NCBI GenBank assembly: GCA_965637545.1
Contig: OZ281499.1
Coordinates: 3,472,001 to 3,536,000, forward strand
From: Phallusia mammillata
Taxonomy: Eukaryota
Direction: 5' to 3'
Length of the DNA stretch: 64,000 nucleotides
Shown: positions 1 to 24,100 of the stretch, piece by piece
Layout: every line of letters starts with the position of its first letter
Numbering within the stretch: position 1 is the first letter of the stretch
Program-made: the position numbers and the translations under genes
Notes under the pieces: model-generated
Databases searched by the model: none
The model's input: the letters and a program-made list of their open reading frames with translations, nothing else
What the model was told of the DNA's origin: nothing

Positions 1-3000
1 ATTTTCGCATAATATAAAATAGTATATGATAGCAAAAGACTGTTTATATCATGTCAATTATTTTAACAATTAAAAAAGTGACTACTTACTAAACATTACA
101 GCAGAAAGATTAGATTACATGAATCGTTAAGAAGTACTATCTGTGCAAACACATATTAACTCGAGCCCGGCATAAAACAAAAATGCTAAAAATTCAATCA
201 AAGAAAACAACTGTTCCACCAAACACTTACAAGTTGTTTGGTTAGGTTTTGTAATTCTTCACAATACTTTTAAAGGCTTGATAACGCACAGCACAGCAAA
301 CGCGCTTATCATCTACTTGTAACTTTACTGAATCAAACATAAACGAAATTGAAAATTTAAACAAACAACCGCTTAAAGCAAAATATCGATAGCAAAACAC
401 TTACAATATGAAGCACCATAAAACCTTCTGCTGTTTCCACATCTAAGGTGTAGTTAGGTATTAAATGTAACGCCGCAAATGCGGGGACCGGCTGCAGCAA
501 CTCGGCACTCAGCGCACACAACAAAGGGAATAAGGAACCGTCGGCGATAAAACACGATGATTCATCAACGTTTCGTAAGGACCTGAGTGACTCACCGTCT
601 CGCAAAATATGAAAATCACATACACGCCTTTATAAAGGGGATGTTCATAAAATCCTTATTTTTCAACACTGACTAAAATGGCATATAAAAACTAAAACAA
701 AGAGAAAAACTAATACCTCTTCACTTGTTTGGGTACATGACAAACCAGAAGGTAATTCCAACTTAATTAAAGAGTTGCGAGCAGTCTAGCGAAACGATAA
801 AAACGTTAAAACGAGTAAAAAGTTCAAAACTCTTGGCTGCAAATGGTTATTTCGGAGCAGAACTAAAATCAGCTAAATCACTTTTGTTATTGGATACCCG
901 ATAACCTTTGGGGTATCCAATATCACAGGAGCTCATAGAGATTTTGCAAAATATCGGATTTAAATTCTGTAAAACAACCCTTTCTCATCACCAAAGCGAC
1001 CCGTAGTTCACGCATGACTCAATTAATCAACTGGCGCAACTTTACGGCGCAGCGAACTGAAAACGGATGCTAATTCAATTGTTTGCCTAACAGCATTGCT
1101 TGCATGCAAGGGGTAGTTACTTATTTTTACCAACCAAAAAAACAACATAATTTAACGGTTGGGCAAATGCAAACAACATCGCGTGAACCAACTACGTGAA
1201 CCATTGTAAACGAAAGGCAAAATGCAGCATGCTTTCGGTCGCAAAGTTTTAATATAATACCTCTCATTCCTAACATGGTCCTATTCCTAACAAGAATAAA
1301 AACGTATATAGCAGCACACTTTCAAACTTAAAAGAGTAAAAGCAGCCTATTGACACTTATATTTTTTAATTCTGAAAACCGTTTATTGGTGTTCGGTAAA
1401 AAGTTGACAAATTTTATGTTCTCAGCTTACATAGGCCGAAACTAAAATAACTGTTAAAGCTTATTACCACTAAGTCCATTAACATACCAACAGATTAATT
1501 AAGTAAAACAAAAGCCACCTGAAAGCAGTTGCATCTCCATAGTTTTTTAAATTGTCCTTTGCTAATTCTTCCTTTTAGTCTCCTTGCTGACAGAACAATA
1601 GCCTGTTTCACATGTACTTTATTGTATGTTACTGCTGCTTTAAAACAGTCAAAATAATCTAACTTACAGCGTGTACATTAATTAACCGCAGCACAATTCA
1701 AAACTATCTAAAAACATAGCTGCAATAAACCAGCCTTTTTGTTCAAACGTGTGACACAAAGAAGACATTCACTTGTTTCGTAACAAAGGAAGTAATATGG
1801 ATCAATGGTTATATTGGCGGGAAAAGTTTTTGCTTTTAGGGGAGCGTTACTGAACATCCATGTTGGACAGTAACTACAGTGTGATATTTTTAATACATAC
1901 ATGACCGATTCTAAATTTATGATTTTGACTGTGGATTGTTACTCATTTTAGTTCGGATAAAAACTTTTACCAAACAACTACGTTGCCTAGCGTGTGATTT
2001 CTTAGTAACTCTGAGGACTTCCTATATGTTGTTTATCAGTTTTGATTGATGGTGGTTTATAAACGCGCGAATAATCGTTCATAGTCCTATTCAGCAAAGT
2101 GCTGCAGTCAACATAGCTACCAAGATCTGATGATTTTTCCACTGTGTTGTTGGTGTTATGACAAGTAACGTACATACTTCTGGTCAAATAATAAATAGAA
2201 AATGAGAAATCCAGTTCATATAGCGTTGTGAACATGGATAAACTGATTGGTAGAACAACAAAAGTTCTTAACAATGTTCGAATTTCCAAGAGGTTATGTT
2301 GACCTCCTTTTTTTAATATAAATTAACTAAGTATTCGGAAATAGTTAAAGAAAGTTGGGCGTGAACTTTGTCTTGTGAGTCTGTCTGAAAAGTTACCTAA
2401 ATGTATAGTTTTAAGGTCCATTTATAGGATTGTATGAATAGGGTAATGTAAACATTGCCCCCGTTAGTATATCACAGCAGGGTGAAGCATAACCGTCCAG
2501 TTTAAAGGCTGACGCGATTTGGCTGTCCAATTTAACGTAATTAAGGCTGGTTAATTGCAATCGACGGTTCTATGCTGCATGGAGCAAACTCATCTAAATG
2601 TTACAAAATAAGAGAACCTTACAAAACCACAACCCTACTTTTGCAAAACGTTAAATAACTAATCCTGGTATATTACAAATGAACAAAACAATTAAAACTG
2701 CCTCAACTAGTCATGGGTAAACGATTTGCAACATAGTCTTTGAGTAAGTATACGCCGTGTAGATAGTTATGTTAATTTTAGGGCGCTGGCCATTCTAACA
2801 TGAGTTTGAATGAGTCATCAAGCAGACACACGTAGGTGAAGCAACCAAAAGTTCAGCATTTGCTAAAATATTTTAACAAACGCTATAGAAATTTGGATAC
2901 AAACTTAATTTCGCCAGTTTTTTCAATTTGACCTATTGCGAAATTTGACTTTAAAGTGCGTCACTCAACCATGTACTGTAATTTGATTGTGGGTTTATCA

Positions 3001-3032
3001 TGGAAATTTTTGTAATGCAGCCATATAACGTG

Positions 3033-3205
3033 GAAGTGGGAGTGTAGTTGGATTATAGTTCACAGTAACCTTATGGACTTCCGGTATTTGTTTATCAGTT
3101 ATGAGTAGCATAAGAGCTAAGTCATATTTGTAGACTCTGCTTCATGCTACCATTATAGCAAATCAAGCCATTCTGGTCTATTAACTTACGATAATATGAA
3201 GCAAG
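3033..3205 (+). promoter_or_regulatory. Putative promoter / non-coding first exon of the IAP gene
   Basis: ETS-type ACTTCCGG at 3077-3084 and GGAAGT at ~3032; strong donor GCAAG|gtgagt at 3205/3206; acceptor tttttacag| at 3555 upstream of ATG 3671. Confidence 0.35.
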
Positions 3206-3670
3206 GTGAGTGTTGGTGTAAAGATTTCGAACCAGACATAATGATTAACATTAATTCTCGATATCAGTAAATTCTCGAACAATAATTATCGATTTCAGAT
3301 TTTAGATTTCAGCATAGCAAATAGATTTTTGGAGGTTTTTTAAACATTGTTCTCAGCTACGTGTATGAGATAGACTTATCCAATGTTTCTAGCTAGTGTC
3401 TGTCATTGAACAGTAAGTTATTTCAGTGGTAGTCGCTAGGATTTCATCATTTGCACCGCATTTTTGTTTTGTCTTCATTTTTCCCGAAACGAAATCGTTA
3501 ATTCCGAAAGCATTACTTATTGGTTTTAAATAAAAATATTTCTTTATTTTTACAGAAAATTCAAAGATTATTGTGGGTTTATTATACTCAACCTACTGTA
3601 AGCAGCGACACTGACTAATTTGCGTAAAGCATTCATAAAAAAATGTCGAAAGAAATTAAATCTGTTTGAA

Positions 3671-6600
3671 ATGGCATCACCAATTTACGTCAACGAGAAA
3701 GAGAAGGTACATACACAGACTGTGGCTCAAACGGAACTTCGTGCTTTGCGAATTGTACTCTGCGCGAATCATGAGAATATGCCGGAAGACTGCAATACAA
3801 ACAAACACGATGCGAATAACTGCCACAACAAGAAAAATGTACCCTGGTCACTTTTTTCGCATGTAAGTTTATACTTTTTGGCTTTTAAACGTCTGAGCAA
3901 TTAAACATTTTTGTCATACATTAATTAAGTACACATATATACTTGCGTTGACGGATAGATTTTATAACTATAACCTATTTAAAGACATTTGAGCTGCATT
4001 TCTGTGGTCATTAAAAACTATGCAATTAGAAAAAGTTTTTACACCATAAACCTCAGAACTGGGAAAATTTGATTGTTGTATCCTAATTGCATTGTTGTAT
4101 TTGTCATTTACAATTTCAAATGCTGTTTTTAGGCTTTGAAAAAATTTACAGAAACGCTCAATTCGACTATGGACATTTGCAAGGTAAGCATTTTAAACCA
4201 GATATTTTCAGTCAAAAAGCCATTAAAATTTGCTTCTATTGGGCTAACATTTATATTCTACAACAGCGCGGTTGTTAATTGGGGTCTAAAATGAAGCGAA
4301 TAAACTAAAATGGTAACAATAATTAACATATTATTTGGTTTGATGTAATAACGTTTTATATATTTTTTAGAAATCCTTAACATTGATACCCCGACGTCAG
4401 ATCATTACTACGAGGCCTACGAGCAAGGTCCCAGACGCTGTCCTGGAATCAAAAGACAATAATGTTTGTAACCCCATTTTTTGTAAATTTTGAACAAACC
4501 GGTTCCGAGTTGCAAGTCGGGCCGGGATTTTTGGGCCGGGTTCAGGTTAGGGCTTAGGTATTTGTGAGAAAACGGGCTTAAAACGGGCCTGACTTTACGT
4601 TCCGTGTCCGCCATTGTTTTTTAAATAAAATCATTCAGCTAAGTAACAATTCTCTGGCTTTGACCTAATTCCCACCTTCCTCTAAAACGTATTGTTTACC
4701 CCATTGTCTACTATTGTTCATTGTGTTTGTTGTTTTTCTCTTTTTTCTTTCTCATCCTTTGTTGCAAGGCTTTCTTAGATAGAAAGCCTGTCAATCAAAA
4801 TTTCGGGCCTACACGGGCTTTGCAAAAGCGTTTCAGGTTCGGGTCGGGCTTCGGGCTTATACTTTCGGGTTCGGGCTTATACTTTCGGGTTCGGGCCGGG
4901 TTCGGGCCGGGTTCGGGCCGGGTTCGGGCCGGGTTCGGGCTCAGATTTTGGTCCCCTTTGCAACTCTGAACCGGTATGTACGTTTTTTGCTGTTTAGGCG
5001 TCGGAAAAAAATGAACAACCTGCAACGGATAGAACCGAAATGGTAATAAGCAATTGATTTTAGAATTTGTAAATCATGTTCTTTAAAACTGCTTATACAC
5101 CTCATAATTTACTAGCAAAAGTATGTTGGGTACGTTACAGCCATGACATATGTATTAAAATGCAGGTTATATATATACAAGTATATGAAATCCGCGACAC
5201 CGTCTTAATGCACTGCCCTGGAAAATCTGGACTTTATCGAGGCGATAAATGTGACCCTGCAACCCAACGAGGTAAAAAAAGTTTTTAGAAAAGAATTGGT
5301 TATTCTAAAAAATCTTAAAAGGCGATCTTAAAATATATGTATACTTTTTGTACAAATGAAAGCGATTTTTATAATTTTAATTGATTTATTGCGATAACGA
5401 TTGTAATCATTAAAGTGTATCCCATAAAAAGATATCCTACACAAAAAAATAAGATTAAAAAAAATATTTTTGATATAATGCACCATTTTTGAATGGCGAA
5501 AGCTTATTCAAATACGACATGCATGAATTATTAAGTTTCGAGGACAAGATTTTGAATTGTTTTAATGTGATTCGACTTTCGCCAACTAAACATCACCGCT
5601 GAACATTTATAACCCTATAAATAATTAAAATACTTTGCAATATAAAGTCGTGAGTTTTACTTTATCCCACGCAGTTTTGGCAAAGACAATGCCACATATA
5701 AAACCTTTCCCGTTTTATTGATCTATGCTATTTTGTTTCTTACAGAGGATGATTATCAACGAATGGACGATTTGGTAAAAAAGCAATTTTTGAAGCCGGA
5801 GGGAAGAATTTTAATTGAAACACGGCTGGGGCGGGTCCAGCTTCAGGTACAGCTCCAGCCTTATTAAATCTTACAAAGCTACTATTAAGCCACTTCTTTG
5901 TTTGATTTAGATGTTTAGCTTCACATTAAACTTGCCTTGAAAAACCTTATTTCCACTTGTAAATCTTGCACTCGTAGACTAAAAATAATTAAAAGTAAGT
6001 CTTGGTAACGCAAAAAGCCGACGTTTAGACTATTTCTAAACATGTTTGGGGGGCGTAGTCCGCCAGGCTTATTAAAGGGGTGATACCGAATCAAGGCGGT
6101 CTCCCAAGCGTTCCCACATGACAAGGCACAGATTAGAAAATAGCCTGCTTTAAATAGGATTCGATACCACGACAGGAGTCTTTCCGGGACTCGCGCTCTA
6201 ACTAAGCTACACAGGCTCACTGGTGATAGCCGTCGAAAGTCGAATCACAAACACCGTTGCCTGCCGTGCATGCTGCACATGTCAGCTTCATAGTAGGGGC
6301 TTGCCAGTTCGACCATATCAGCTAAAAAAGAAAACATCCATACTGCGATCAGACGATGCAGACCAGCGATGACGGCATACGCATTGCAAATCATAGTACA
6401 CCATGTCTGTTAAAAAGCTTATACCAAATCACGCCCGTCTCCCACGCATTCCCATTTCCCATACTTTTTTAGGTGATAATTATTGTTTATTTAACTGTTT
6501 TTGTTTACAGGGTGATTGGAACCCTGAAAAGCTGGACCCGATTGTGCTGACTGTTTTTAAACCCCAGTCGTTGCACAATACACTGATAAACTTACGGTAA

Positions 6601-9116
6601 GTTTTATCGTGTCATTCATGGCACATGCACGGAACTATTTTTACGTTATCCAAGTTGCCTTCAGCATAATTCGCTGACATTTTATTAAACCAATTAAACT
6701 CTCCATCGGCAATGATTGGTTGTCAGATTGTGTTGTGGACACGTTTAAGCAAAACGGTAAAATAACGAGGGTTTGTGTAAACACTGATTGGCTCTTGTCG
6801 GTTGACCAAATTACGGCCAAAAAACGCGATGTGCTTCGAAAAAACATTTTTCTGGTCTGCTCTTTCCAATCAACAAGAAATTTTGCAACTTAATTGTAGT
6901 TTGCTTGCTAAGGTTAATAAAGTTAACTTTACCGAGTGGTGTTTTAAGCTCAACATTTATGCGATCTGTGTTTCAACAAAAATCACTTCAGGTGTTTACA
7001 ACTCAACTTCGATTTGGCGATTTTGTCACGTGATTTTGGCGATTTTGTCACGTGACAAAAACTGTATTGTTGACATTTGACATTTTTCAGACCGTCGGCA
7101 TCAAGCCATTTTGAAGCAAACAAACTAATGAATTCACCTAATTCGGATACAGAAATTCAAGGTAGATTGATGTGTTATGTTGTGCATGGTGCAAATTTTG
7201 GGTTTGTATAAAGTTTGGGCTAGCTAGGATCAGTACGATGGATATTTCGCAGAATTGAGTTTTTTGACGGCCTGTTGAATTCTATGATGACGTCACAGTG
7301 ACGTCATGTATGTGACGTATCCGGGTCATGACGTGGTTCATTATGTATCAATATTGTTAGGTTACGTCATAGGCTTAGGAAGTTAAGAAAGTACACTAGA
7401 CCCCAAATTTTTGTTTTGTTGTTTTATTAGTATTACTTTTTTTCAACCAACACCTAACTAATAACTTTCAAACTGTTTGGTATCGTTGAGTTTAAGTGAA
7501 ATAGATTACTTACACCTGCTGCACACCAATGTTGGTAATCAAAAGGCTTTCTTTTAAAATTGTAAGCATTTTTTAGATCAGCGATTGGTGGAAAACAATA
7601 TTGTAGATGTTCCAACAAATTCACAAAAACAAAGTTCTGCAAAACATATTGGAAAATACCAAAACCCAGAATCTGATGAGGAGCGTGTTTTTACGGATGA
7701 TAATTCAATAAATCTGAAATGTCTTAAAGGTGATTTTTACGATACACCTGGTGTAAAAAAAGTTTAATGTATTTGCTATCGAAATTTTGCACTTATATGT
7801 ATTTTGACACATATTATTGGATGGTCATGCAAAGGGTATGCTCGTTGAAATTGGTGATACAGCTACAGATGCAATTGCAGCTTGAAAATAATGAACAATA
7901 CTGAGTGTGCAATCATGACCATCTATAGATATGTTGTATTGGCTTATTTTTCTGTAACAATTAGATGCACAATCGTCAAATTGCAACCAAAATGTGTCAG
8001 GCATTGAAAAACAAGTGCACGATGGAAAAAAGTTTGCAACAAAAGTCGAAAGTAAAGTGGAAGGCAACGACAATGGTGGTAACATCTGTGGTTTAGATGT
8101 TGTTGATAAAGATCAAGGTATATATTTTTTTGTTTACTGACTTGAGTTGTCAGAATGGATGTTTTTATGACTTTTAATGTTTTAGATGTCCAAAATGTCA
8201 CAAATGCTAAAGAATATAGCAATCATGATGATTTTTCACCACCCACTATTGGAGAATACATAACACACCGTGTAACTTTTCCAGTTACTGACAAATATGT
8301 GCATGAAGAGTCAACAAGTGATGTGGTATTGGAGTTTGTTGATGGTGTATATAACCAGTTCGTACAAGCCATGCAGATTTGCACTGACCTTTCAGTTACA
8401 AATTGGATTTCAGCTGTAACATGTTTCTTGCACAAGGTCAACGACTTGTGCATAAATGCTTATACCAAAACAGAGCCCTTGTCCACAGCAGAAGAAATTG
8501 GTTGCGCCATGCACATGGTGAATAATTTGTCTTTACACCAGTTCGAGAGGCTTACAACAACTGGAATTAATGTCAACAATGGAAGAAACATATTTGTTAA
8601 CACATGCTTTTTGTTGGCAAACCTTGAAACAGCCAGGGCTTTTTCAACCAACCTTGATGACAATGATGATGACTGGTACAACACAAAGTTTGACATGATA
8701 AGAAAGTTTTTGATTTTGAAAACCTCAGGTGTGTACACACATATGTATCTAACAAACTATAAGTCAATTCCTCAGTTCACTAAACTCAATATGAGACACC
8801 TAGTCTAATACTCATTCACTTGTTTTGTAGACAAGGCTTTCACAAAACTTCGTGATAACCAGGAATGGCTGATGAAATGTGCTACAGTTCTTGGTGATTA
8901 TCATGTTCTAGAGCAAATAGAAAAGGAGCAAAGGACTCTTTTGGAAAATTATCAAGTTCAAAGTTGCAGCACTGCACATAGAGAGAAAAACCGAGTAATA
9001 TTACCAAACCTCTTACTTTTGGTACAACTTTTGGTTACTTGTGTTTTGCTAAAGATTTTTTACTATTCATGCATTTACCAATTGCAGGTCGAAGCTGATG
9101 GCAACATTTATGACAG
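3671..9116 (+). CDS. 12 coding exons (~580 aa) of unknown domain content upstream of BIR1 (N-terminal extension of the IAP, or a separate adjacent gene)
   Basis: All 12 exons have pyrimidine-rich AG acceptors and GT donors and stay in one open frame. They include the 543-nt exon 8186-8728 (ORF-track 217-aa ORF, ...[42 protein letters not shown]...). No recognisable family motif. Confidence 0.75.
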
Positions 9117-12100
9117 GTTTGCATAAAAATGACTACACCAATGTAATAGCTTCGCTGATTCTGCATTTTGAGTATTGTTGTCTTTTTCTGAAGGGCCTGA
9201 CATTGCTGTACAACTGCGATTTGTACTGTTTTGGGTAAAAATAATTTGATTTTGTACAGAGCAAGAGATCCACCAGGCCAAAGAAGTGTATATATTCCAC
9301 CTGGGGATGCGAATATGGAATCATACAGACTTTCAACATTCATAAAATATCCACAGGAGGTACCAGTCAACCCAAGGCACTTGGCCTCAGCTGGGTTTTA
9401 CTACACTGGTTACAAAGACAGAGTCAAATGTTTCAGGTTAGATCAAATGTTGAAAGCTGGAACTTAGCCAAACGGATCTTTTGTTACAGATATAAAATTA
9501 GTAAACAGTGCCAAAGCTTATTTTTGCTTTGAACTTTTACCAAAAAAATATTGCTCATTTACATTCTAAACTAATGTAAATCGGGTGGAATTGTGGTTGG
9601 TCTAATGTTTTGCTAATTTTTTATCAACTTGCTGTTCTGTTAATCACAGTTTTTTATATTCCTTTGATTTTACAATAGATAAAACCTAGGAAAATATACT
9701 ACATATTTTTTAATAATAAGTAGGGGGCTTACCTAAGAGTTCTGGTTTAAAAAACTTGCAATTAAATAAAAACTTTGATTGAGTAAACAATGAAAATTTG
9801 CTGTTTCAAAAATAATATTGTTTTTTATACACAACAACATCAATAAATTTGATATTAATAAATTTATGTTTAAAAATAGTATTACAAGAAGAAAAATTTA
9901 ATAACAAAACATATAAAAATAAACTTACCAAAGATCCGCTAATTCTTGCAAACTCTTCCTGTCAAATTCTTGTAACCTTTTGTTATCTGACTCAAAGCTT
10001 AACACAGCCATTCGACAATAATGCTTACTTTGCCCGTTAAGTGAAAGCTTACTTACTCTTGGGCACAACAAGTGGCGAGTATTTTGCTCGTAGGTATTTT
10101 TTCTACCGCCATGTCCACGTACCTTTCAAATACTGCTAGAGTTTTATTTTTTGTAACTCCTGGCTAACACCAAGTGGAGGATTTTTTGTTTGCTGAATTT
10201 TTTTCTATACAATGTGTCCGTGCAACTTCAAATACTGCCATACTGCTTCCCATGTTATACATAATAAAATGATTTATATTCATACAGACATCAATATACT
10301 TTACCTTATGTAATTGTTATTCTGAAAAAAACTAAACAAACCACTGAATTAAATTTGTGAACAATTTTTTTTTTACTTGGAGATTTTATTTTATGATATA
10401 TCAGCTAATCAATATTTACTGTTCTAATACTGTTTCTTTTGAATCATGACCTGTTCATTGACGGTAAGATTGTAAATCCTTGTTTATGTTATGATATATT
10501 GATTGTGGGTTGCACTAAAACCATGCATCTTTTGGTACCTTTATGTATATGTACAAGATTTCCAAAAGGGTAAAGCCATCCAATTGTTTTTCTAGTTGTG
10601 GTTTATGCTGTGAGAATTGGGTGTTTGGTGATGATGTTCGGTCGGCGCAGTGGCATCGCAGTGATTGTGCTTTTGTGCAGGGCAGGGACAGTGGAAATGT
10701 GCCCATAGGTAACTTCTAGAAGTATGAACTTTCAATCAAAACCTGTTAACTAAAGATTTATGATCAAACTCTTTCAAATAATGTTACCTAGACAATTATT
10801 AAAGCCAATGTTTCAATCATATTTTTAAGGACCTGACACATTGATTCTCAAACTGTTACCATAGAATATGATGGTTTTAATACTATTTTAATAGACCACA
10901 TAGATTTTTAAACAAATTTTAGTGTTATATGTGGTGTAAACTAAAAGCTGCTACATTTGTTACAGAGGTAAAAACCAGCTTATGACTGTAGACCATTTAG
11001 AATTTATAACATGTAGAAATCTGTACACTGGTTTATTCAAGTATTTAGGCCCAGAATCCCAAAAGTTTAAAACCATGATGTTAGTACACAGTTGTATATC
11101 AATAAAATGATACTTTAATCTATAAAGTTTATTGAGTTTGGATATAAGTATTGGTTGTAAGTTGCTTGTTTGAATTTTTCCGATATTTGGTTTACTCTAT
11201 ACAGGTGGTGGAGGACTTGCTAGATTTATGATGCCAGCAAGATCACAGGAAGGGATCCATGCTATGGACACTGGTCCAGTAAGTAACAGACGATCCAACC
11301 TTTTTATGCATGTAGTGACCTTTATGTCATGTATTTACAGCCATCCAGCAATTTTACTGCATCAAGTGGCACAGCAAAACAAGTTCTAAATGCACAAACC
11401 CCATCTGCTGGATCAGTTTTGCTGTCACATTCTGCTGGTTGTAAGTAACAATTAGTGGACTGTGACCCATGGAATATTTTGTTTTTTGTAGAGTTTATTA
11501 ATTTATTAAAAGGCTTTTCTTGCTTAGAAAGTCAATCTGGTTGTCTGAACATTTATAAGTGTTTAATAATAGTGTGCCTGTAGTATAAATCTTCTATGTA
11601 TTAGTGGAGCCATCCTGTTTTACATTCCTTACAATTGCCTAAAGCACATTGTCATCTTATACCAATATTTTTAGCTATATAAACAGTTTTACCAAGCGTC
11701 AACCTTTGGGGTGAAATAATAGGTTGTACTTCTCAAGAATAGTGTTTTTTTGCTAAAGGAGTTTTGCTCTAATTTTATGCACATGACAGAATCAATAAAA
11801 AATCCACCTTAATGATGTCTGCTTTACACAATTTTTTAGCAAACCAATCCACTCCCATGCAGACAGCCCGGCCTGTAACCAGAAATCAACCATTGTTTCA
11901 GGTACCGCATGCATAATTTTTAACATTTTTACATCCTGTGAGAACGGTTTGACAGGTTTGTTATGTTTTACGTTCAAATTTTGAGCTGTTACATTATTGC
12001 ATGCTTTGGTGTATTTTATAGATTGTAGAATTTGCGACCATTCCGTCTGCATACCATGAAAACTTTCTGAAAAACCTAGACCTTAGAAAAGAGAGTGAAA

Positions 12101-15100
12101 GAGCGTAAGTAGGAAAGTGCCGATTAGCCTAAACCACAATTGAAATTGGCTTAAACTCAATCATCAGTGAAATATTTGATTCGGATGCACCAATTTTGTA
12201 AACTAGAGCTTCAGTACATAACTACTATTTAGTTTTCATTTTCACTCTAAGGAGCTAGTGTTTTTTTTTTTTTTTTTCTAAACCAATATGTATCAAACCA
12301 TTGGTTATTTGATATCAACAATCTGTTCTCTATCAACATACGTTTTTTTTGTATTTCTGCATTAAAATTGTAATGATTGCAAATATGATGGTAGAGTATC
12401 ATGAGAACATCCATTTTCTTGTTATGTTGGTTTGAGTTTATTTCAGAATGTTTACACTAAATTGCAGTCGGACATTCGAACATTGGCCTTCTGAAACCCC
12501 AACAGTCTACCCAGCAGACTTGGCAAGATCAGGATTTTTTTATCTTGGTAATCTCGACCGAGTTCAATGTTTTTCTTGTGGTGGTGTCTTGAGAAATTGG
12601 AACTATGGTGATAATGTGCAAGCTGAACATCGCAGACACTTTCCGCATTGCAAGTATGTTGACACTGACTGTCTCATAATTGAACTTGGTTTATAGTCTT
12701 TATTTTTGTGTAGAATGTGCCAGGGTTCAGAAACAAGAAATGTGCAACTGACACCAGATGAACGTGCAGCTGTTCCAAGTCAACAAACTGTGTTTCATGA
12801 ACCACCAGATCCATCTGAGGACCAATCTGTAAGTTACAAAGTTTGCCATTGCATTCTTAACATGTCAATATAGTTTCTACACAGATGGGAACCGTATTTG
12901 CTCAATGTGTTTTACATTCCAGAGGGACCTCCGCAACATGTTTCAATGCCAATACCCAGTTAGCCCACACATGAGAAATGAAGACACTCGCTTTGAAAGT
13001 TTCGACCATCGTTGGCCAGAAAGTCAAGTTAATGCAACTCCAAGACAAATTGCTAGAGCTGGATTCTTTTTCTTGGGTACAAAACTAAAAAAAAAAGTTA
13101 TACAAACAGCTCGTCTATTTTTTGATTATCTACAGCACTGCTTTTTAACCTTTTTAAGTTTCAACTATGTTGTTTCAATTTAACTGTTAATGAACTTAAA
13201 CAAAACAGTGAAATAATGAAAATAGTACAGGTTTGAGTGAATATTCAATATATTTTATTGTAAGTCATCGTGATTCAAATTATAACTTATTTGGCTTAGG
13301 ATTAAGAACACACCTAGTTTAAGATTGTTTATGCATAGAGAAAACCCTGTCATGTTGTTATGTGTTTTACCAAACATCAGTTTGTATAAAACATGGTCAT
13401 ATAATGCAAGTTTCCATTTATGACAACACCATTATTACTGCACAGGAGAGAGAGATCGTGTGAAGTGTTGGTATTGCAATGGAGGTCTTCAAAACTGGGA
13501 TCCACAAGATGAACCATGGACAGAACATGCAAAGTGGTTTCCAACGTAAGTTGCATGTAATTTGTTACATAAATTCAGAACACTTCGTATAGCTGGATGT
13601 ATGTCCAAGATAACATAAAATATTTCAAGTTGGTTGCAAGTCATACCATTTCACTTGTTATACATCGATATGGGCAGTATGTTGGCCAGGAAACATATTT
13701 GTGTCCAACTATAGAATGGTAACTTGAGCTACCTAGACCATTGTGTCACAATCACATGAATTCCCCTCCTGTCTGAAATGTACAGCAGACATACAAAAAA
13801 GCTGGTGATTTTTTTGTGGGGGAATCCCCCACTGGTGCTGCTTTTTGGTATGTCAAGAGGATTATTTCCTGTATTGCGCCACTCTGTACTGAGCACCAAA
13901 CCATTATCTATTTTCCTTTAGGAGACAAATGCTCAAATTTCTTTTGTTGGGTGTATAAAAATGTTTGTTTCTAATCATAATGTTGCATTATTTTAGATGC
14001 TACCAAAAATATTTTTTTATGTTTGAAACAGTTGGTGATATACTAATAAAAATATAATGGATATCAATTTGATTACTTTCCACTGTATGTGTACACATAA
14101 ATATGTACTGGCATTTATTAGTGTAACATGTTGTGTACAGAAAATTTAACAAAAACATTCTTGCAAATAAAACTTGGGTTAAACTACAGAAAAAATCAGT
14201 TTGACCTTGTGCTAATTTGGATAAAAGATGAGGTATGAGTGATTTATATTGCTTCACTTAACGAAATCATTTGGTTTAACCAGATTGTTAAATTCAAATT
14301 TCTGCCTAATCCTCCCACCCAAATTTTTTAATAATTGCACAGTTATTGTATTTATTAGGGATAGGCCGAGCGGAAAAAAAACGAAATGGAATGCTATAAA
14401 ACTAGCATTCAATTAGAATGTTTGTGACGTCATAATGCACCGCGCGTTCTTGTCCAAGCACCGAGCATAAGTCTTAGATGTTCGGTGCTCGACGAAACAG
14501 AACATTTGCAGTTTAGGCCCATCCCTAGTTTTAATTGTTCAATAATAGAATTTGTTGACTTCAGATGTGAGTTTTTGCTGCAAAGAAAGGGTCCTGATTT
14601 TGTTCATCGCATGGTGTCAATGTTTCCAAATCTTCCCCGACCATTACTTCGTGGACCACACGATGTCGCACCACCCAACCCTGGGCGAAGAATTGCTTAT
14701 GGAACAGCATCTGCACGAGCTCCTTCCCCACCACCACCTATCATTGATCCACAGGTAAAAGATGGCATGGTCACTATTTCACAATGCTAACTGGTACTAA
14801 TAACTGTAAATTGAAATGAGAGTTATGTTGTTTTGCTACCAAAAGAAAATTACAGTCTACTTATCTTGCGGTCATATTTTCTTGGATTAATGTCACTTTC
14901 CCCACTAAAAAAATTTGGCGGCATTTAAAAATGGTGCATGAAAAATTTTGTAAACAAGGTTTTGTATATCAAAGTCAAGTTGATTAAAACTGCAAGGAGA
15001 CCCATGCCAAGTGTGATTATTGGTTGAATTAAGTTATGTTTGACACATGAGTTAATGCTAACTACACAACTGCATGAAATGGTTAGGTACTCTTAAGAAT

Positions 15101-18100
15101 TTTTTGAAGTCTGTTTGACCTTTTTAGGAGATACAAATCTTCTTGAAGTGTATGAAACCACAAGAAAAGATTGGGTATTTTTAGCCAACATTTAAAAATG
15201 TTCACAATAATATGGATGTCAGAGTTTTGTTTATATTCAACCTTTTGTATAATTTCTGTATTAAGTATTGCTTGGCAAATTTGGGTCCGTTTTTAAGAGT
15301 GGCATTGACAAATCCATGTGCACTTAGCAGAACACACATAGCAAAAACTTTACATAGGAGATAATAAGCATAGAAAAGTTTGTGAGCATGGCTACCAGCA
15401 TAAAAGCAAATATATTTATGTGTATGTATTTGCTAAAACACAAAACCTATTACTTGTTGGTCAGTTACCAAATTCTGGCAAAACAGGCTTTTTACTACTT
15501 TTTAATGACATAGGATAGTTTTGGTGTTAAGTCACCCAGTTTTTTCTGTGAGTTCATCCTTATGTGAAAAGAGTTTTTTTGAAGTTTTAGTGCATTGTAT
15601 ATCATAATAACAACTAATTATGCATGAAATAATACTGTGTTTTGTCTTAAATTAGTAGTGTACAAAGGCATATCACCAACATTCAGTGTGAAAATTTTCA
15701 ACTTAAAATGTCAAAGTGTTTCCTCTTTCTCAAAAAACTATTAGTCTTTATAAATTGACAACTGACGTTGACAAACAAGTCATTCAATGCCTAAAGGTTA
15801 CACTTTACATATATATTGCTTTGTTTTGTCAAAGGCTGAAATGCAGCGGGAAAGACAAAAGATACAGGAGGCGATGAACTCTGACATTGTCAAGGCAGCA
15901 ATTGAAATGGGCTTTGAGAGGAAAGTTGTTCGTCATGTTGTGAAGAGGTGCAAGATAAATTTACATCTGCGTTTAAAAATAAAGAAGAAAATAACACAAT
16001 CAAACTTTTATGTTCAAAGCAACTCAAATTGTTTGCATACTTAACGAATTTTGAACTTGTTACTGAAGATCCCCCAGAAAAATGTACTTTTACCAATGTA
16101 GACTGTTAATCATATATAAGCATAAAAACTAAAACAAATTGACAACAAAAATGTTAATGTATGGATCACTTTTACATGAACCCTTAGTATTGCTAAAAAA
16201 AGGAATATAAAACATTAAATCATTATGGTACTCTGCTGCCAATAATGTTCATGTGAACTACCTAAGAGACCAGATTTTTATTTCCAAGCATTTGACGTGT
16301 AAAAAAACATCACTTTGCATACAGACGAATTCGTCGAGCGGATATGTACACAACAGTTGCTGACTTGGTTGATGATGTCACAGGTAACACAGGTGATGTA
16401 TCAGACAGTGATGATGAAGAAAATGAAAGTTCCATGCAATCTCAGCCATCAACATCTGCTAAAACACTAGCAGGAGGTTTGTTTGATTGATGTTGTACCA
16501 CATCACAGATTTACTACTTGATGTTGTTTAAGTGTTGTCCATTATATTGGAAATTTTTGCTCAATTAAAGTAATTAGGTGTTAGGGGAGACTGGGGATGG
16601 CTCAGACAATTTTAAAAACAAACAAAAAACAGTGAATATCTATAAATTTTAGTTTGTTTAATAGGGCAATCATTGGCCGATAGAAGTAAAGCCAGTAAAA
16701 CAATTAGCAACTATAAAAAGTCCAAACAAAGCAGCTATTAATTGTCCAAAGTTAACCTGGTATGGTAAACCCTGGATAGACCATAGGATATGATTTAACA
16801 AATAATTTGACCTATTAACAACAAATCTGTCCTATTTTTTTCCATTTTTATTTTTCACCATGTGCAATTTAACACTAATTTTGACATAAGTGTTCTAACA
16901 TAGGTGTCAGTAGAGATACCTCTACCAACAGGTCTAATGTACTCCCAACCTTGTGGAAAAAATGAGTAAAAAAGAGCCAACTGATTGCTTAATACCTAAA
17001 TTATCAAGTGCTAATCAAAAATTGCTGATAATAAATAACTTTTATTATAAAAACGGACATTTCAGTAATCTGCATTTAGTTACACCCTTACAAACCAAAT
17101 TTAAACATCTAGATATTTGCAATGTTTTCATTATTTTAGTTGTTGCAAATAATTAAAGCCAAACTTGTTTTAAACAACTATTTGCTTTTTATTCGACGCA
17201 TAGAGGATTTTATCAAAGATATCACAATATTTTTGGATGGCTTTGTATGCTGTATCCAGAGTGTCCCAGTGTCCGAATTATCCCCAGTCTCCCCTGCTGT
17301 TTGTATATAATACAGAATCTGTATTTTATATTATAAATAGCTCAACTTCAACCCTTTCTTTAGTTTTAGGATCTATCATTTTATTTCAGGGGTTACCATT
17401 TAGCAAAATTTAAAATTTTAGTTTAATAACACCAAACATATATCTTTTAATTTACTCAGGGCTAAAAGGAGCATGCAGGTCAGTAGCAATTATACAATTC
17501 TAAGTTGCTTGTCACTCAATTTAAAAGATGGTACCAAAGGAAGGTAGTTACTAGGAAAGACAGTCTTTTTGCATTGTGAGATTTGTGTTAGAATTAGACA
17601 CATACTCAGGCAGCAATTTTTTTATGACATAAGTTTTTATAATGTAGGAGCCTGATTTTTTCAAAATGAATTGTTTAGCCTTACAGTCAACTGTGTATAA
17701 AAGGAAGATATTTGTTTAGCAAGCAAAAACATTGTAAGGAAAGAATGGTCTAAGTTACAGGTAGACTGTTTAGGAAGCGAAAAGTTCCAGAGTAATTTTG
17801 GGTCCAATTTAGATCAGAAATTTTTTCTTCTTGCTTTTGCAAACTTTCTGATAGACAACTGTATTTGTTTCATCTCCAAACTTTTTTGCAAACAGAAACA
17901 GATAACACTGAAAAATGGAATACACTTTATGTTGATGAAAACAGAAATTGATAAATCATCTGCTACAGAACTGTTTACAACATTGCAGCTCTTGGGCAGT
18001 TTTTGGTTTGAACAGGTCACTTTTCATGTTCATGTCAAGTGTTCCTAGATATGACTTACACTAGTTACAAAATGTTGCAACAAAAGTATGGAAACTGTCC

Positions 18101-21100
18101 CCTTTTCTTATCTTTGATGATTCTTATTTGCTGATGTGATTTCATGGATACAGTCATTATACAGAATTCATCTGCTGTTCCATTTATTGAAATCTGTTTG
18201 TTTTCTCAGTACAACTGTGTTGTATGGAAAAAAGTTGTACCAAGTGTTTGTTGTCACCACATCAATCAGATCCGAAAACATACAAGAAAGAACACATTGG
18301 AAAATCTCTGGGGTTATGAGAGTCTGTTATTGGATTTTGAAATTGATTTTATTGGATTTTGAAATTTTTAAAAAAATTGTCGTATGCCTATACAGTGACC
18401 GAATTATAGAAGTTAATTTTCTTCTGATCATTGAACAAGAGGAAAATGTTGCATGAATGAAGTTGCTGGACTTGGAATTGTTTTTGCATCTGAGCAATCT
18501 GCATAACTGACTCTACATTGTTTGAAAGTTACATTTTGCATAAAGAATGATGCAGTAAACTGATTTTCATGCATCCTAAACGTAAACTGATTTTCATGAA
18601 TCCTACAAATTGTAACAAGCAGGAAAGATCTGAATAAGAGAACATTCATTTGGAAAATTGACTTTTTTGCAATTTTTTTGTGTTGTTTGTTTCTAAACAC
18701 TGATTTTTATTTGTTGTTGCTCTGTGACAGTACATTGTTGTTGTTTTTTGTATTCTTGATTATTCAACCTTGCATCCCCCCTACATATTTTTATTTCTTG
18801 TACTATTTTGTGCCATATGTCATAAATTTCTACTCTACAGATTAGCATCAGGATTTGATTGTAAATCATAAAAGCTGTGGTTCTGGTATGACAAGGAAAT
18901 TGTGCAGCATCTGTTTTGCCTCATACCACTGTGTCCATTGGGTTTGTATACCCCTTTGACAGTTTCACATTGACTAATTTTAAAAACTCATTCATTAAAT
19001 TGGAATGCTTGACTAAATTTTAATTACTGTTGTTTTTGTCAAACAAAACATTTGGATTTTAAATGCCAGAAAATTGTTCCCCGAGTCTGTTCAACTGCTT
19101 GATTGCTATTTCGGAAAAGTGAAAATGATTTGCATCTTCTTGAGTCCACGCCCCACATTATTTGGACTTGGGTTGTTAAACCTGAAACCCTGAACCAATT
19201 TAACTTGTAACTCAACTACCAGCTTCTGAACATTGTCATTTAGGTATTTTTTGATGAATGCAAAACCACATGCGAAAAGCGCAAATGATTCACAACAGTT
19301 CAAGATGATTGTGGAACTGAGGAACTGTGAAAATCTTGTACCAGTGTCAAGTTTGTCCACACTAAATACTGGTGTGGAGTGTATCCTTGATGTTAGCTGA
19401 AAGGTAAATTTTAAACATTTCTAATTTTCATACAGGCTCGGCTCTATCACTTGCTATACACAAAGTGGTATGAGATTTTATTGAACTAATACCAGAAAAT
19501 TGAACTAATACCAGAAAAAGCGAAGCAGTTGATTTCTATCTTTGTTTGGGATGCATTTGAAATAGACAATTAAAGTGTAAATAGACAAAAACATTTGGAA
19601 GCATTTTGGACCAAAACAATACACAAAAGATGAAAATGGTCATTGGAAAAAATACTTTGTGATGAAAAATTTGACCAATGTTAACTGAAGCTTCACTGCC
19701 AAAGTTTCTTTGTAAAAATGTGGTTAACGGACTTGTTATTGAAGCAAATGATAAAGGCAAAGCTGACCTTTTGTATCATGACAAAGTTTTTTAGAAATTG
19801 CAAACTAGATTCCAGGTTCACATTGGATAAGTGTCAATCCTGTTGTTGTTACTCACGAAGACTCAAGCAAAGGTCATTATTTGGCTTGACCAAATTGGTT
19901 GTTCTACCAACATAAGCTGAATACATGGTTAGATGAAGACCTGGATTGGAGACCAACTGAAAGGACTTTGCCACTTAAGATCAATTTTGGATGTGTTGTA
20001 TTGATATTCGTCTTCGTCTACTGGGATAAACAATTGTTTAGCAAGAAAAAACAGTTTAACATGTTATTGGCCTGTACAAAAATAAAAGATTTCCAAGAAT
20101 GTTTTTTTACCTTTTGTCAGCAGTTTTATTTATTCAAAGTATCAATTTAACTGTTCTCCTCCAAAATTTCTTGTTAGCTTTGCACATTTAAAACTTGTTT
20201 AAATAAGTAATTGGTTGAAACATATTTTTTTAATTTGGTGGCAACATTAGGGAAGCTCATAATATCATTCCAATTTCAACTTCTCTTTAAACTGTTCTCT
20301 GAATGTAATAACAATTCAGAGAGTCTCGAAACTGTTTAGAAGATCTCATAAGATTTGTATGCATGATCAAAACATTTGCATGTTGTTTTACATCACCTAC
20401 AAATGTGTGTTGCATGATTCACACACTTGTGATATGTAATGCATGACTAGTTTGTGGTAAAACGTGAAAAAGCATGAAACTATCACAATGAACATCAAGT
20501 TTTAATCACAACCAAGAAGAGCATGTTGACCTTCACTGGAGATGAAGTTCTCACAAGATACTGTGCTGTATGGGGCTGTTGTGTAAATAACATTTATTTG
20601 CACTTGAAAGAAGAAGCGTTATTGTTGTGTTGTGTATTTGTATGGCTTGCCCACAGAATAAAACAATATGTCACATCACAACAAAATTATGAGTGCTTCA
20701 AAGCAAGGTTGCCATACCCTCCCTATCTGTCCTTAATTTGATGTACATCATGAAAATAAATTAGACTGTCTTTATTTCTAAGAAATTATCTTATTTCTGA
20801 CACACACCCTTATTTTTATACGTTTGGTCTTTCATTTTACCTTACATGTTCACTATCATTTTCATTTATGACAACTTGTATACAATATAGCACCTTACTA
20901 TTAGCACAATAGGTTACTAGATTCACTTGTAGGATTTTTTTAATGTAAAAATTTACCATTTGAAATCAAATATCAGTGGCTTCAATATGTTTTTGTGTAA
21001 AATCCATTGCCAGTCTCATTTGTCTCATTTTATTGTGTTACATTGATGGCAACCCAGCTTATAACAGTGTGTGAACAACCTAACTTCCAAGCACTCATAA

Positions 21101-24100
21101 AACATCAGCATGAGCAAGTTTTCTAATTTAAAACGAATGACAAGTATTAATACAAGCAAATTTGTTGTTATGTTTTCATTTAGTAGTACAAGTAATCACT
21201 TGATAAAGCATTAGTTTGTTTCGATGTCTACTTTCAAACTAGAGACTATTAATGTAAAACAGCCATGATACATGGATTCCCCATTTTAAATTTAGGTTTC
21301 ATAAGTCTGCATAACCAAGTTAACAGCTACAAGGGAAATGGACCGTTAAAGAACTGAACATTGGGTATTAAATCTGAGGTCACATAGGCTAAATTGGCAA
21401 GTTGCCAAATACACTATTCAATTTGCTGAAAAAACATTTAATTATCAATTTTGTTTCAAGCTTTCACTCGGCCTAACTTAGGTGGTAAGATTGTGAACTC
21501 TTCCATCTGTCTGGTAATTTTGATTGGTCAGAATTGTTTCTCTTGTGGTTCTTTGGATGATGCTTTGAAATCTTTATGATGGTTTTCAAAATCTTTTAAA
21601 GGGTTGCAGTTGCATAAGTTAAGCAGAGATTATTTGATAAGCCTAGACATTTCATTGCTAAGCCCAGACATTTACTTTAGTTAGTAAGGATTTTAGATTT
21701 TGCAGTAAAGCATGGAATTATCAAAGAAGAATCTTTGCATTTACAATAGGAAAAGTGCCTTCACAGGTAATGCATTTCAAGCAGTTAGATTTTCTTCACC
21801 TGTACATTGTTTCAGGTAATTATGTAGCAACTGATCACTTGCTATGTGACAATCCTTTAGTACTCTGTAAGTGCATGAATAGAGTGCAGAACTCCACAGT
21901 AAATATATTTACACACAAGGCGAGGACACATATGTTTAAAGAGGTGACAAAGTGATTATGTATGAGATGTAGATTTTTGGTGAGTTGTTGACTTCTTGTT
22001 GTTTTTGACATTATTTTACTATCTCAAATACAAAACAATACAAATAATAAAATTCCAACTAGACAATAGGAATTGAAAAACTCCAGACTTAATTGTTCTT
22101 TACCAGTTTGGTCTGTTTTTGTTAGCTGGATCCATATTCTCACCCCACTTTTTACTTCTTCGATTGTCAACTGAATGATAAAAGAAAGTAAACTTGAAAT
22201 TGCTTTTTTAATAGGGTCACAATCATCAGCACCAAATGAACAGTCATCCATGGAAATTGAAGGTAGGCCAACAAACTTATTTATTACCTATAAGAAAAAA
22301 CATATCGTGAAAAATAACTTTCACTGATGGAACCAGTCAAGTTGGGATTGAAAAGCTAACCACCCATGTTGTGGAAAGAGTGTTGGGTTTCACAGGAAAA
22401 GAAACCCTGTCGGATAACTTCCGGTGCCAGAAGAAAGGGTGCAACACAAAACACAGTGGTGATAGTACATGATATGTAGTTGTACTACCTTACATAAAAA
22501 TGAGTCCATAGGTTTTGGGGATACTGAAGTTGGGAAACGCCATCAGCTTCCTAAATCTTATAAAGAAACAATCAAGATCTCAATTAATTATGGGTCCCCT
22601 TCCCTGAAGGGGACACATTTTGATTTTACTCGATTTTTTTTTTTTTTCTTGTTTTTTTTTTTCTTCCCTCAAGTTTGTCCACCCCACTTTGCCAAGAAAT
22701 GTTTGATGGATTTGGATGAAATTTTCACTGATGGTAGATATGGTTATGTAGATGTGCCATTTGTTTTGTTTGACTCGATAGCCCCAGTGTTTACCCCACT
22801 AGCCCCCTAAAATGGGTGATTTTTTAAACAATGTCCGAATCGGATGAAATTTGGATAGTTTGTTCATTGTGCCATTTTAGGGCATCGTTTGTTATGTTTT
22901 ACCCTGTAGCCCCAATATTTACCCCACTAGCCCCCTAAAATGGGTGATTTTTTAAACAATGTCCGAATTGGATGAAATTTGGACAGTTTGTTCATTGTGC
23001 CATTTTAGGGCATCGTTTGTTGTGTTTTACCCTGTAGCCCCAATATTTACCCCACTAGCCCCCTAAAATGGGTGATTTTTAAACAATGTCCGAATTGGAT
23101 GAAATTTGGACAGTTTGTTCATTGTGCCATTTTAGGGCATCGTTTGTTGTGTTTTACCCTGTAGCCCCAATATTTACCCCACTAGCCCCCTAAAATGGGT
23201 GATTTTTTAAACAATGTCCGAATTGGATGAAATTTGGACAGTTTGTTCATTGTGCCATTTTAGGGCATCGTTTGTTGTGTTTTACCCTGTAGCCCCAATA
23301 TTTACCCCACTAGACCCCAAAAATGGGTGATTTTTTAAACAATGTCCGATTTGGATGAAATTTGGACAGTTTGTTCATTGTTCCATTTTAGGGCGTCGAT
23401 TATTGTGTTTCACCATGTAGCCAAATATTTACTACTTAAGCCACCTATGGTTTATAAAACGTCCGATTTGGGTGAATTTTTGATAGTTTTTTGAATTTGG
23501 CATTTGTAGCTGTAAATATTGTGTTCCACCCTGCAGCCCTAATATTTACCCTACCAACCCCCCAAAATGGGTGAATTAATCAACAATACATTTTGACACT
23601 TTGTATAATATGCCATTTTGAGATGTCAGTGTTTTGTGCTATTTAGGCACACAAACTTATAACATTGTCTCAATTGCATGAGATTTGGACAGTTTGTACT
23701 TTACATAACTTGTTTTTTTAAGTAACACTACCAATCACTGTGTTTGACTTTATAGCACCATTTCTTATGGTTGTCTGTTTACAACTTTGCGGTTTTGGGG
23801 ACCCATGAGTTTCTGCCTGCAGAAACAAATCAAGATTATAAAAATGTTGGCTAATATGGGACCCAATATAAATAAATATAGAGAATATATTACAGTTTGC
23901 AGAATAGGTTGTAGTGTATATGCTATAGTAAAATGTGCTAAGCCACCCTTCTAGTTTATGGAAAGGTTCTTGCTCATTTCCCCTAGAGTGAAAAAGAAAA
24001 TATAGCTGAACCTTGTGCACATTAGGCTGATGTGAAAGGCATCCCAGGAAATGTAGAGATTTCAAAATATTAGGCTACGAATTAAAAATTTTTGGCAAAA

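Follow-up and report, generated by a model that had tools for sequence, protein, structure and literature searches.

Does the inhibitor-of-apoptosis (IAP) gene at this locus of the ascidian Phallusia mammillata carry a long N-terminal module of its own, or does the open frame ahead of its first BIR repeat belong to another gene, or to chance? The window analysed here is a stretch of 64,000 nucleotides (assembly GCA_965637545.1, contig OZ281499.1, positions 3,472,001 to 3,536,000 of the forward strand), to whose first letter all coordinates refer; it has 35% G+C, zero N and short exons of eukaryotic type. An original prediction, made from the letters, had placed 12 exons at 3671-9116 in one frame and let them add about 600 aa to a BIR3-UBA-RING protein. 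We found that a single gene on the plus strand (7091-24677) codes for an IAP of about 990 aa, its exons being traced by the public proteins P0001, P0002 and P0005, and that cis-splicing within this one gene joins an N-terminal module, so far uncharacterised, in frame to a 3xBIR-UBA-RING IAP. The product reads, in order, an acidic stretch of about 110 aa, a helical part of about 190 aa, a D-G pre-BIR1 motif, three BIRs, a UBA and a C-terminal RING. On the whole we consider it likely that one gene here joins an NLR-like helical module to an IAP of the XIAP/cIAP type, with a function of the domain that we infer.

Transcripts and layout of the gene

The 5' part of the gene, through BIR1, consists of the following features.

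7091-7161, plus strand: first confirmed exon, with start codon ATG 7128 (MNSPNSD...); joint 7161/7577
7577-7729 and 7965-8117, plus strand: acidic exons, 153 nt each; joints 7729/7965 and 8117/8186
8186-8728, plus strand: large exon of 181 codons, bulk of the helical domain (P0001 residues 115-294); contigs of four runs
8831-9021, plus strand: final helices of the domain, then a short hydrophobic linker, which is present in P0001; joints 8728/8831 and 9021/9088
9088-9116, plus strand: 29-nt micro-exon (exon 13), VEADGNIYD; X1 record 2 and X2 record 6
9260-10708, plus strand: BIR1, in two exons (9260-9436 and 10596-10708); Pfam BIR, E=2e-9; joint 9116/9260

Fourteen sequencing runs guessed to be RNA contained words of 8100-9500, and the four best held 56-60% of them, about the exonic share. 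The contigs of four runs (X1, X2, X5 and X6, from three studies) were placed on 3500-9499, and since these contigs skip GT..AG introns they are derived from RNA. The joint 8728/8831 was found in all four runs, 7161/7577 in X1, X2 and X5, 8117/8186 in X1, X2 and X6, 9021/9088 in the same three (two studies), and 7729/7965 in X1 and X2. The joint from the module into BIR1, 9116/9260, was present in X1 and X2, and a single contig (X1 record 2, 1228 nt) spans 7094 to 9350 and crosses all six joints. This junction check bore out the proposal that exon 13 is spliced in frame into the BIR1 exon at 9260. Exon 13 lies between exon 12 and the BIR1 exon inside single contigs (X1 record 2 and X2 record 6); because it is shorter than the 31-letter words of Logan, the path of such a contig needs single words that reach from exon 12 across exon 13 into the BIR1 exon. 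A loose end after 9436 resumes at 10596, in the second half of BIR1. The contigs showed the cis-spliced form only, and among the loose ends listed none was at 9260, where it should be kept in mind that contigs drop rare forms.

Two details of the prediction had to be revised. Exon 12 had been ended at 8994, whereas X1, X2 and X6 place its donor at 9021/9022, so that the exon gains 27 nt, or nine codons (VILPNLLLL), with the frame unchanged. The site at 8994, in frame and leaving an exon 27 nt shorter, may serve some transcripts as an alternative 5' splice site; the X5 contig halts exactly at this alternative donor, where 8994 is followed by GTAATA. The extension ahead of the RDPPG motif is 368 aa rather than about 600 aa when counted from ATG 7128, which is also where the public protein P0001 starts. 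The X1 contig begins at 7094 and the X2 contig at 7086, with 14 further letters placed nowhere in 3500-9499, and X2 record 5 has TTCAG directly 5' of 7091. An in-frame TGA at 7071 is relevant if the RNA is unspliced upstream of 7091. A Ciona-type spliced leader (SL) at 7091 was rejected on the weak ground that the TTCAG of the X2 contig misfits the 3' end of the SL.

Near this 5' end, at 6995-7060 and so 30-90 bp upstream of exon 7091, ggcgattttgtcacgtga is directly repeated and accompanied by two CACGTG E-boxes; this could be the promoter if transcription begins near 7086. The intron after exon 8 holds clustered TGACGTCA / TGACGT (CRE-like) motifs at 7280-7335, and an X1 contig ending at 7373 extends for 255 letters that were placed nowhere in the window.

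The remaining exons encode the rest of the IAP body, those between 11205 and 16476 having been traced by tblastn of P0001, P0002 and P0005 plus splice-site fitting.

11205-11278, 11341-11440, 11840-11901 and 12022-12104, plus strand: linker exons; tblastn plus splice-site fitting, boundaries model-based
12468-12653 and 12714-12828, plus strand: BIR2; tblastn of P0001, P0002 and P0005, Pfam BIR 7e-21
12923-13076 and 13446-13545, plus strand: BIR3; tblastn plus splice-site fitting, Pfam BIR 6e-5
14565-14754, plus strand: IAP-body exon; tblastn plus splice-site fitting
15835-15947, plus strand: UBA exon; Pfam UBA_BIRC2-3, E 3e-7 on window 15829-15948
16325-16476, plus strand: IAP-body exon; tblastn plus splice-site fitting
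about 22214-22262, plus strand: small exon of ~49 nt; tblastn to P0002 and P0005
24478-24677, plus strand: RING exon, closing with the stop codon; Pfam zf-C3HC4_3, E 6e-17 on 24480-24674

The BIR3-UBA-RING body named in the prediction was thus recovered by Pfam on the window exons, and P0001 has three BIR stretches by Pfam (E 9e-42). A second copy of the helical domain was searched for inside the window and none was found, and Rfam and tRNA scans gave no matches.

The proposed exons 1-7

Seven exons of the predicted chain lie upstream of 7091.

3671-3862, 4133-4183, 4371-4463, 4998-5042, 5166-5271, 5746-5846 and 6511-6596, plus strand: exons 1-7 of the original prediction, not counted in the gene

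The whole chain could be rebuilt with canonical GT/AG sites as one frame of 654 codons from 3671 into the BIR1 exon at 9260. Splice-site choice alone can make an open frame, and the chain was therefore tested against RNA, homologues and chance. From 7161 on, its joints, apart from the donor at 8994, were backed by RNA as described above. Exons 1-7 had zero contig cover in X1, X2, X5 and X6, the depth in 4500-6500 coming solely from repeats. The words of exon 1 (3671-3862) were present at 100% in DNA-type runs and in the unclassified 2024 runs X15 and X16, and at 0.00 in all the runs guessed to be RNA. Exon 7 closes with TTACG, as against the TTCAG that precedes 7091 in X2 record 5, so that a junction between exon 7 and 7091 is not what the contig shows. 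Neither a Pfam match nor a tblastn match to the N-termini of other tunicate IAPs was obtained for exons 1-7.

For the chance test, we searched for the longest frame-consistent chain with pyrimidine-rich YAG acceptors and GTR donors, in the real sequence and in dinucleotide shuffles. The longest chain in 3600-7090 was 800 nt on the plus strand and 995 nt on the minus strand. Chains of 173-1057 nt arose in 40 shuffles of this region, and 23 of the 40 reached the 674 nt of the prediction. In 7000-9500, by comparison, the real chain measured 1271 nt and none of 20 shuffles exceeded 731 nt. The predicted frame is no better than chance in its upstream half and far better than chance in its downstream half, and exons 1-7 are spurious. 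The Cys/His-containing globular segment (~aa 20-230) that had been read from these chance-level exons falls with them. A degenerate NBD in exons 1-7 was considered and rejected, given the absence of a P-loop in the open frame and the chance-level chain length.

Two repeat-covered spots in this region, a minisatellite of the GGGTTCGGGCC type at 4480-4960 and a dispersed repeat at 6050-6450, have high RNA depth with loose ends on both sides; ARAGORN found no tRNA in the 6050-6450 repeat.

The helical domain, its relatives and its fold

An exhaustive phmmer search with exon 11 as the query against 1.84 billion representatives returned as real relatives only IAPs of this species, P0001 (757 aa, 100% identity across exon 11, 8186-8728) and its paralogue P0002 (916 aa, 38%); a match to the bacterial RTX protein P0003 was rejected as compositional. 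P0001 (CAB3225588.1 / A0A6F9D7T1, 'ZF(RING)-14 zinc finger protein', transcript-derived) is the product of this gene; it begins with MNSPNSD at ATG 7128 in exon 8, has the same junction between module and BIR1, and is cut off in BIR3 through read-through into an intron. Four Phallusia proteins in the public database join the module to an IAP body. A search with the IAP body gave many tunicate IAPs of 850-1560 aa, and vertebrate cIAP1/2 were among its matches at 28-35% identity.

A local hidden Markov model (HMM) was built on the helical part alone, with the pre-BIR1 motif excluded, and iterated. Its first round found Phallusia P0007 (E 5e-36) and Clavelina lepadiformis proteins (1e-5 to 8e-8); after one iteration, sequences that were not yet members included Ciona intestinalis proteins (6e-12 to 7e-6) and, at about 1e-28, Clavelina P0008 and the database protein P0012. 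The domain occurs in 21 IAPs, eight from Clavelina, six from Ciona, five from Phallusia (P0001, P0002, P0005, P0006 and P0007) and two further database proteins, always N-terminal of BIR1 and 20-60 residues ahead of it. In the paralogues and orthologues only 20-120 aa precede it. The architecture, suggested earlier to be possibly lineage-specific, is no one-off; it is common to Phallusia, Ciona and Clavelina, in proteins already held by public databases under the names 'ZF(RING)-14' or 'XIAP-like'; these names reflect the RING/BIR part only, and the N-terminal domain is unannotated there. No Pfam family was found for the domain in the exon pieces, in P0001 and P0002, or in the 20 family members scanned. 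Homologues that are always stand-alone genes would have spoken for another reading, and these were looked for: a profile search found no stand-alone homologue among proteins of 124-394 aa, and every match sits before the BIR1 of an IAP.

Exon 13 opens a conserved pre-BIR1 motif, in which D-G is nearly invariant (20-sequence alignment A3); ascidian IAPs without the helical domain have this motif too, at their residues ~10-50. Because the motif is shared with IAPs that lack the domain, the evolutionary point of addition is the 9021/9088 junction. The acidic low-complexity stretch (about aa 12-113) has no Pfam match, is missing from or unalignable in the paralogues, and is probably disordered over its ~110 aa.

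The module is uncharacterised, as had been suspected. A 2026 survey of 2,843 IAPs, in which architectures were defined by InterPro domains, counts 18 IAPs with a divergent repertoire in Ciona and makes no mention of this N-terminal module (PMC13159474). Our literature search, which left subscription journals outside, found no paper on it. The core of the extension is a domain of ascidian IAPs not described before, and its predicted fold is NLR-like.

The paralogues diverge in a mosaic manner. Between P0001 and P0002 or P0005 the N-domains are 34% identical and the 350 residues from RDPPG on are 93-94% identical; for P0001 and P0007 the values are 36% for the N-domain and 74% for the body. The window IAP exons match P0001 rather than P0002 or P0005, and these are therefore distinct loci. 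Such identities suggest N-domain lineages that are old and IAP bodies that were homogenised recently, or else recombination between them. The small exon at 22214-22262 encodes 16 residues that are 100% identical to P0002, though the neighbouring exons are nearer to P0005, which from the sequence reads as another sign of mosaic exchange between paralogues.

The division into an acidic spacer (7091-8117) and a helical block (8186-9021) held, the latter being built of helices by AlphaFold. A first model from four sequences was all-helical with pLDDT 70; a second from alignment A3 reached pLDDT 76 (core 85-90) with ten helices and five concordant models. When both were compared by VIA-align with 48,161 PDB representatives, NLRs ranked first. 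For the second model the top seven were all NLRs, namely NOD2 (Z 11.5, 172 aa), NLRP2, NLRP3, NLRP1, an oocyte-lattice NLRP, NLRP3 and NLRP9, and the best unrelated chain had Z 7.7. VIA on Foldseek's list gave NLRs in all of the top nine places, with NLRP3 398-751 and NOD2 456-792 at Z 12.1 each; the NOD2 match (5irl) has a root-mean-square deviation of 3.4 A over 160 aa. In the ESM Atlas a NOD1 cluster (NACHT, NLRC4_HD2, WHD_NOD2) came first with TM 0.63 over 181 residues, the next row being at 0.45. The NLR matches cover about 160-180 of the ~190 ordered residues. The matched chain ranges of NOD2 and NLRP3 we take to be the end of HD1, the WHD and the HD2, by published domain boundaries. The best matches are to this HD1-WHD-HD2 region of NOD2, NLRP3, NLRP1, NLRP2 and NLRP9 (Z 8-12.1), values in the grey zone for helical folds and without profile support.

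Other parts of an NLR were looked for as well. No GxxxxGK[ST] P-loop occurs in any open frame of window 1-9300 in six frames, the sole match, on the minus strand, being broken by stops, and none is present in the N-terminal extension of any IAP protein fetched, the long tunicate IAPs included. Pfam gave no NACHT match, and no LRR in P0001, P0002 and relatives. The model is all helix, with no winged-helix strands predicted. A PDB profile search with A3 returned only biased matches to Plasmodium ISN1 (E 0.02), the ESM Atlas' own model of P0001 was poor (pLDDT 0.44), and the feature look-up there gave no match. Judging from the models, the domain probably has an NLR-like fold, a view we hold with some reserve, and the case for its true descent from an NLR stands about evenly balanced.

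Several points weigh against the account given here. The 9116/9260 joint comes from two runs of one study only, and P0001 may be derived from related data, which would limit the independence of the RNA evidence. The contigs are compatible with minor isoforms (an IAP-only mRNA trans-spliced at 9260, or a form that retains intron 12 and ends at TAA 9124), and a further exon upstream of 7091 is possible. One could build from this a pair of genes, as neighbours or in an operon, of which the upstream one ends at TAA 9124 and the IAP mRNA is SL-trans-spliced at 9260 and starts at a Met before BIR1, the joined contigs being rare conjoined transcripts. The frame is indeed open through 8995-9123 up to this TAA, a Met lies 5 residues ahead of the BIR1 core, tunicates use operons and SL trans-splicing, and rare variants are dropped by contigs. 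Yet the assembled forms are only those spliced at 9021/9088 and 9116/9260, the same in-frame architecture recurs in the paralogues and in Ciona and Clavelina proteins, neither phmmer nor the profile search (124-394 aa) found a stand-alone homologue of the upstream part, and exon 13 belongs to a motif found in IAPs without the module, which together make two genes very improbable. The full chain of the original prediction, in which exons 3671-6596 would contribute about 230 aa of globular protein, conceivably a degenerate nucleotide-binding domain, and be expressed only in unsampled tissues or stages, is scarcely credible. Canonical sites let the frame be chained, exon 8 is open upstream of ATG 7128, X2 record 5 carries the 14 unplaced letters 5' of 7086, and a P-loop-like 'CPGKS' lies within the proposed exon 5; but exons 1-7 lack RNA cover, a canonical P-loop, a Pfam match and similarity to other IAP N-termini, more than half of the shuffles yield such chains, the TTCAG 5' of 7091 conflicts with the end of exon 7, and the related proteins have room for only 20-120 aa before the helical domain.

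For the fold, the likeness to NLRs comes from predicted models only, and Z 8-12 is below the ~13 that the VIA tool's own calibration wants for helical proteins. Foldseek against the PDB gave nothing better than E 0.05 with both models, and profile searches at the sequence level (Pfam, PDB) matched neither WHD_NOD2 nor NLRC4_HD2 nor NACHT. In another reading the fusion is real, but its helical part is an alpha-solenoid or helical bundle of a generic kind, whose likeness to WHD-HD2 is convergent or a modelling bias and which would serve simply as a spacer or in interactions, unconnected with NLR biology; besides the grey-zone Z values and the missing sequence-level signal, this would agree with the Foldseek output, which holds only designed repeats (E > 0.05), and with the Atlas search of the first model, which gave PPR/TPR at TM 0.4. 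We regard it as rather unlikely, in that NLRs take the top 7-9 ranks in three VIA runs with two models and are followed by a gap to unrelated chains, an independent library also ranks the NOD1 cluster first (TM 0.63 against 0.45), and the match spans nearly the whole ordered domain.

Possible function and other observations

IAPs are central inhibitors of caspases and also hubs in the signalling of innate immunity. By its domain content, the C-terminal body of the fused protein would act like XIAP/cIAP, with BIRs that bind caspases or antagonists bearing an IAP-binding motif (IBM), a UBA that binds ubiquitin chains and RING dimers that ubiquitinate. The N-terminal NLR-like domain could serve as a partner-binding or autoregulatory module that sets the choice of partner or keeps the ligase closed; having no ATPase, it could not be a nucleotide switch. 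By analogy, a partner-binding or auto-inhibitory module is the most likely role, as vertebrate cIAP1 is held closed by its CARD, which ascidian IAPs lack. Caspases may cleave at the conserved xxxD-G between the module and BIR1 and so free the module. The 'sensor or scaffold' role proposed earlier would gain some substance from the NLR-like fold. Since the N-domains have diverged and the IAP bodies are near-identical, each paralogue may be aimed at a different partner. A bolder scenario, which we put forward as a speculation and think unlikely, is that the N-domain is a descendant of the NLR WHD-HD2, captured without the ATPase by an ancestral ascidian IAP and independently of NAIP, which would let RING IAPs dock on or copy the oligomer interface of NLR sensors; gene-converted bodies with diversifying N-domains would then form a small set of differently aimed immune or cell-death ubiquitin ligases.

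Among known systems, the closest in layout are XIAP, cIAP1-2 and DIAP2, which share the order of three BIRs, a UBA of the BIRC2/3 type and, at the C-terminus, a C3HC4 RING. The Phallusia IAP differs from these in its 368-aa extension with the conserved helical domain, in its D-G pre-BIR1 motif and in having no CARD; CARD insertion is gnathostome-specific (PMC13159474). NAIP resembles it in joining a BIR array to an NLR-type helical architecture, and the structural matches include NAIP5 631-915 (Z about 7), but NAIP (BIR x3 - NACHT - LRR) has the reverse order, and the Phallusia protein has RING and UBA and no NBD/P-loop or LRR. NAIP-like IAPs are reported only from gnathostomes (PMC13159474), and the Phallusia combination would therefore be an independent union. 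The HD1-WHD-HD2 part of the NACHT module of NOD1, NOD2 and NLRP3 is the best predicted-fold match, at an identity of 8-13% and with no Pfam match, and the NBD that WHD-HD2 normally clamps is absent. The ascidian 'ZF(RING)-14' / 'XIAP-like' proteins (CAB3225588.1, CAB3225578.1, and Ciona and Clavelina RefSeq entries) are the same family, with N-domain plus IAP body.

How IAPs gained CARD, NACHT and FIIND is an active question, and tunicates have lost Apaf-1 and caspase-9 (PMC13159474). An NLR-like domain in ascidian IAPs, if true, would mean that IAP and NLR architectures came together a second time, independently, in chordates, and in animals reported without Apaf-1/caspase-9, and the hypothesis is testable in Ciona or Phallusia embryos. 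The gene model itself is corrected at two places, namely the public protein that is truncated in BIR3 and the seven spurious exons of the prediction.

In Endozoicomonas symbionts of ascidians, the 'RING-HC finger proteins' P0020, P0047 and P0057 are 38-49% identical to the IAP body, pre-BIR1 motif included, a similarity that looks like transfer of a gene from host to symbiont; a related mussel parasite is known to have IAPs (PMC12491435).

Elsewhere in the window, a 507-codon open reading frame on the minus strand (26936-28459), without a Pfam match and within a block of G+C 0.42 at 26-34 kb, may be a mobile element. The 16-mer ATTCTATTTGAATAAG, the Ciona spliced leader, occurs as an exact copy on the minus strand at 49789-49804, against a chance expectation of about 3e-5 per window. 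ATAATG rather than a GT donor comes after it, and it may be an SL-bearing retrocopy and not an SL RNA gene.

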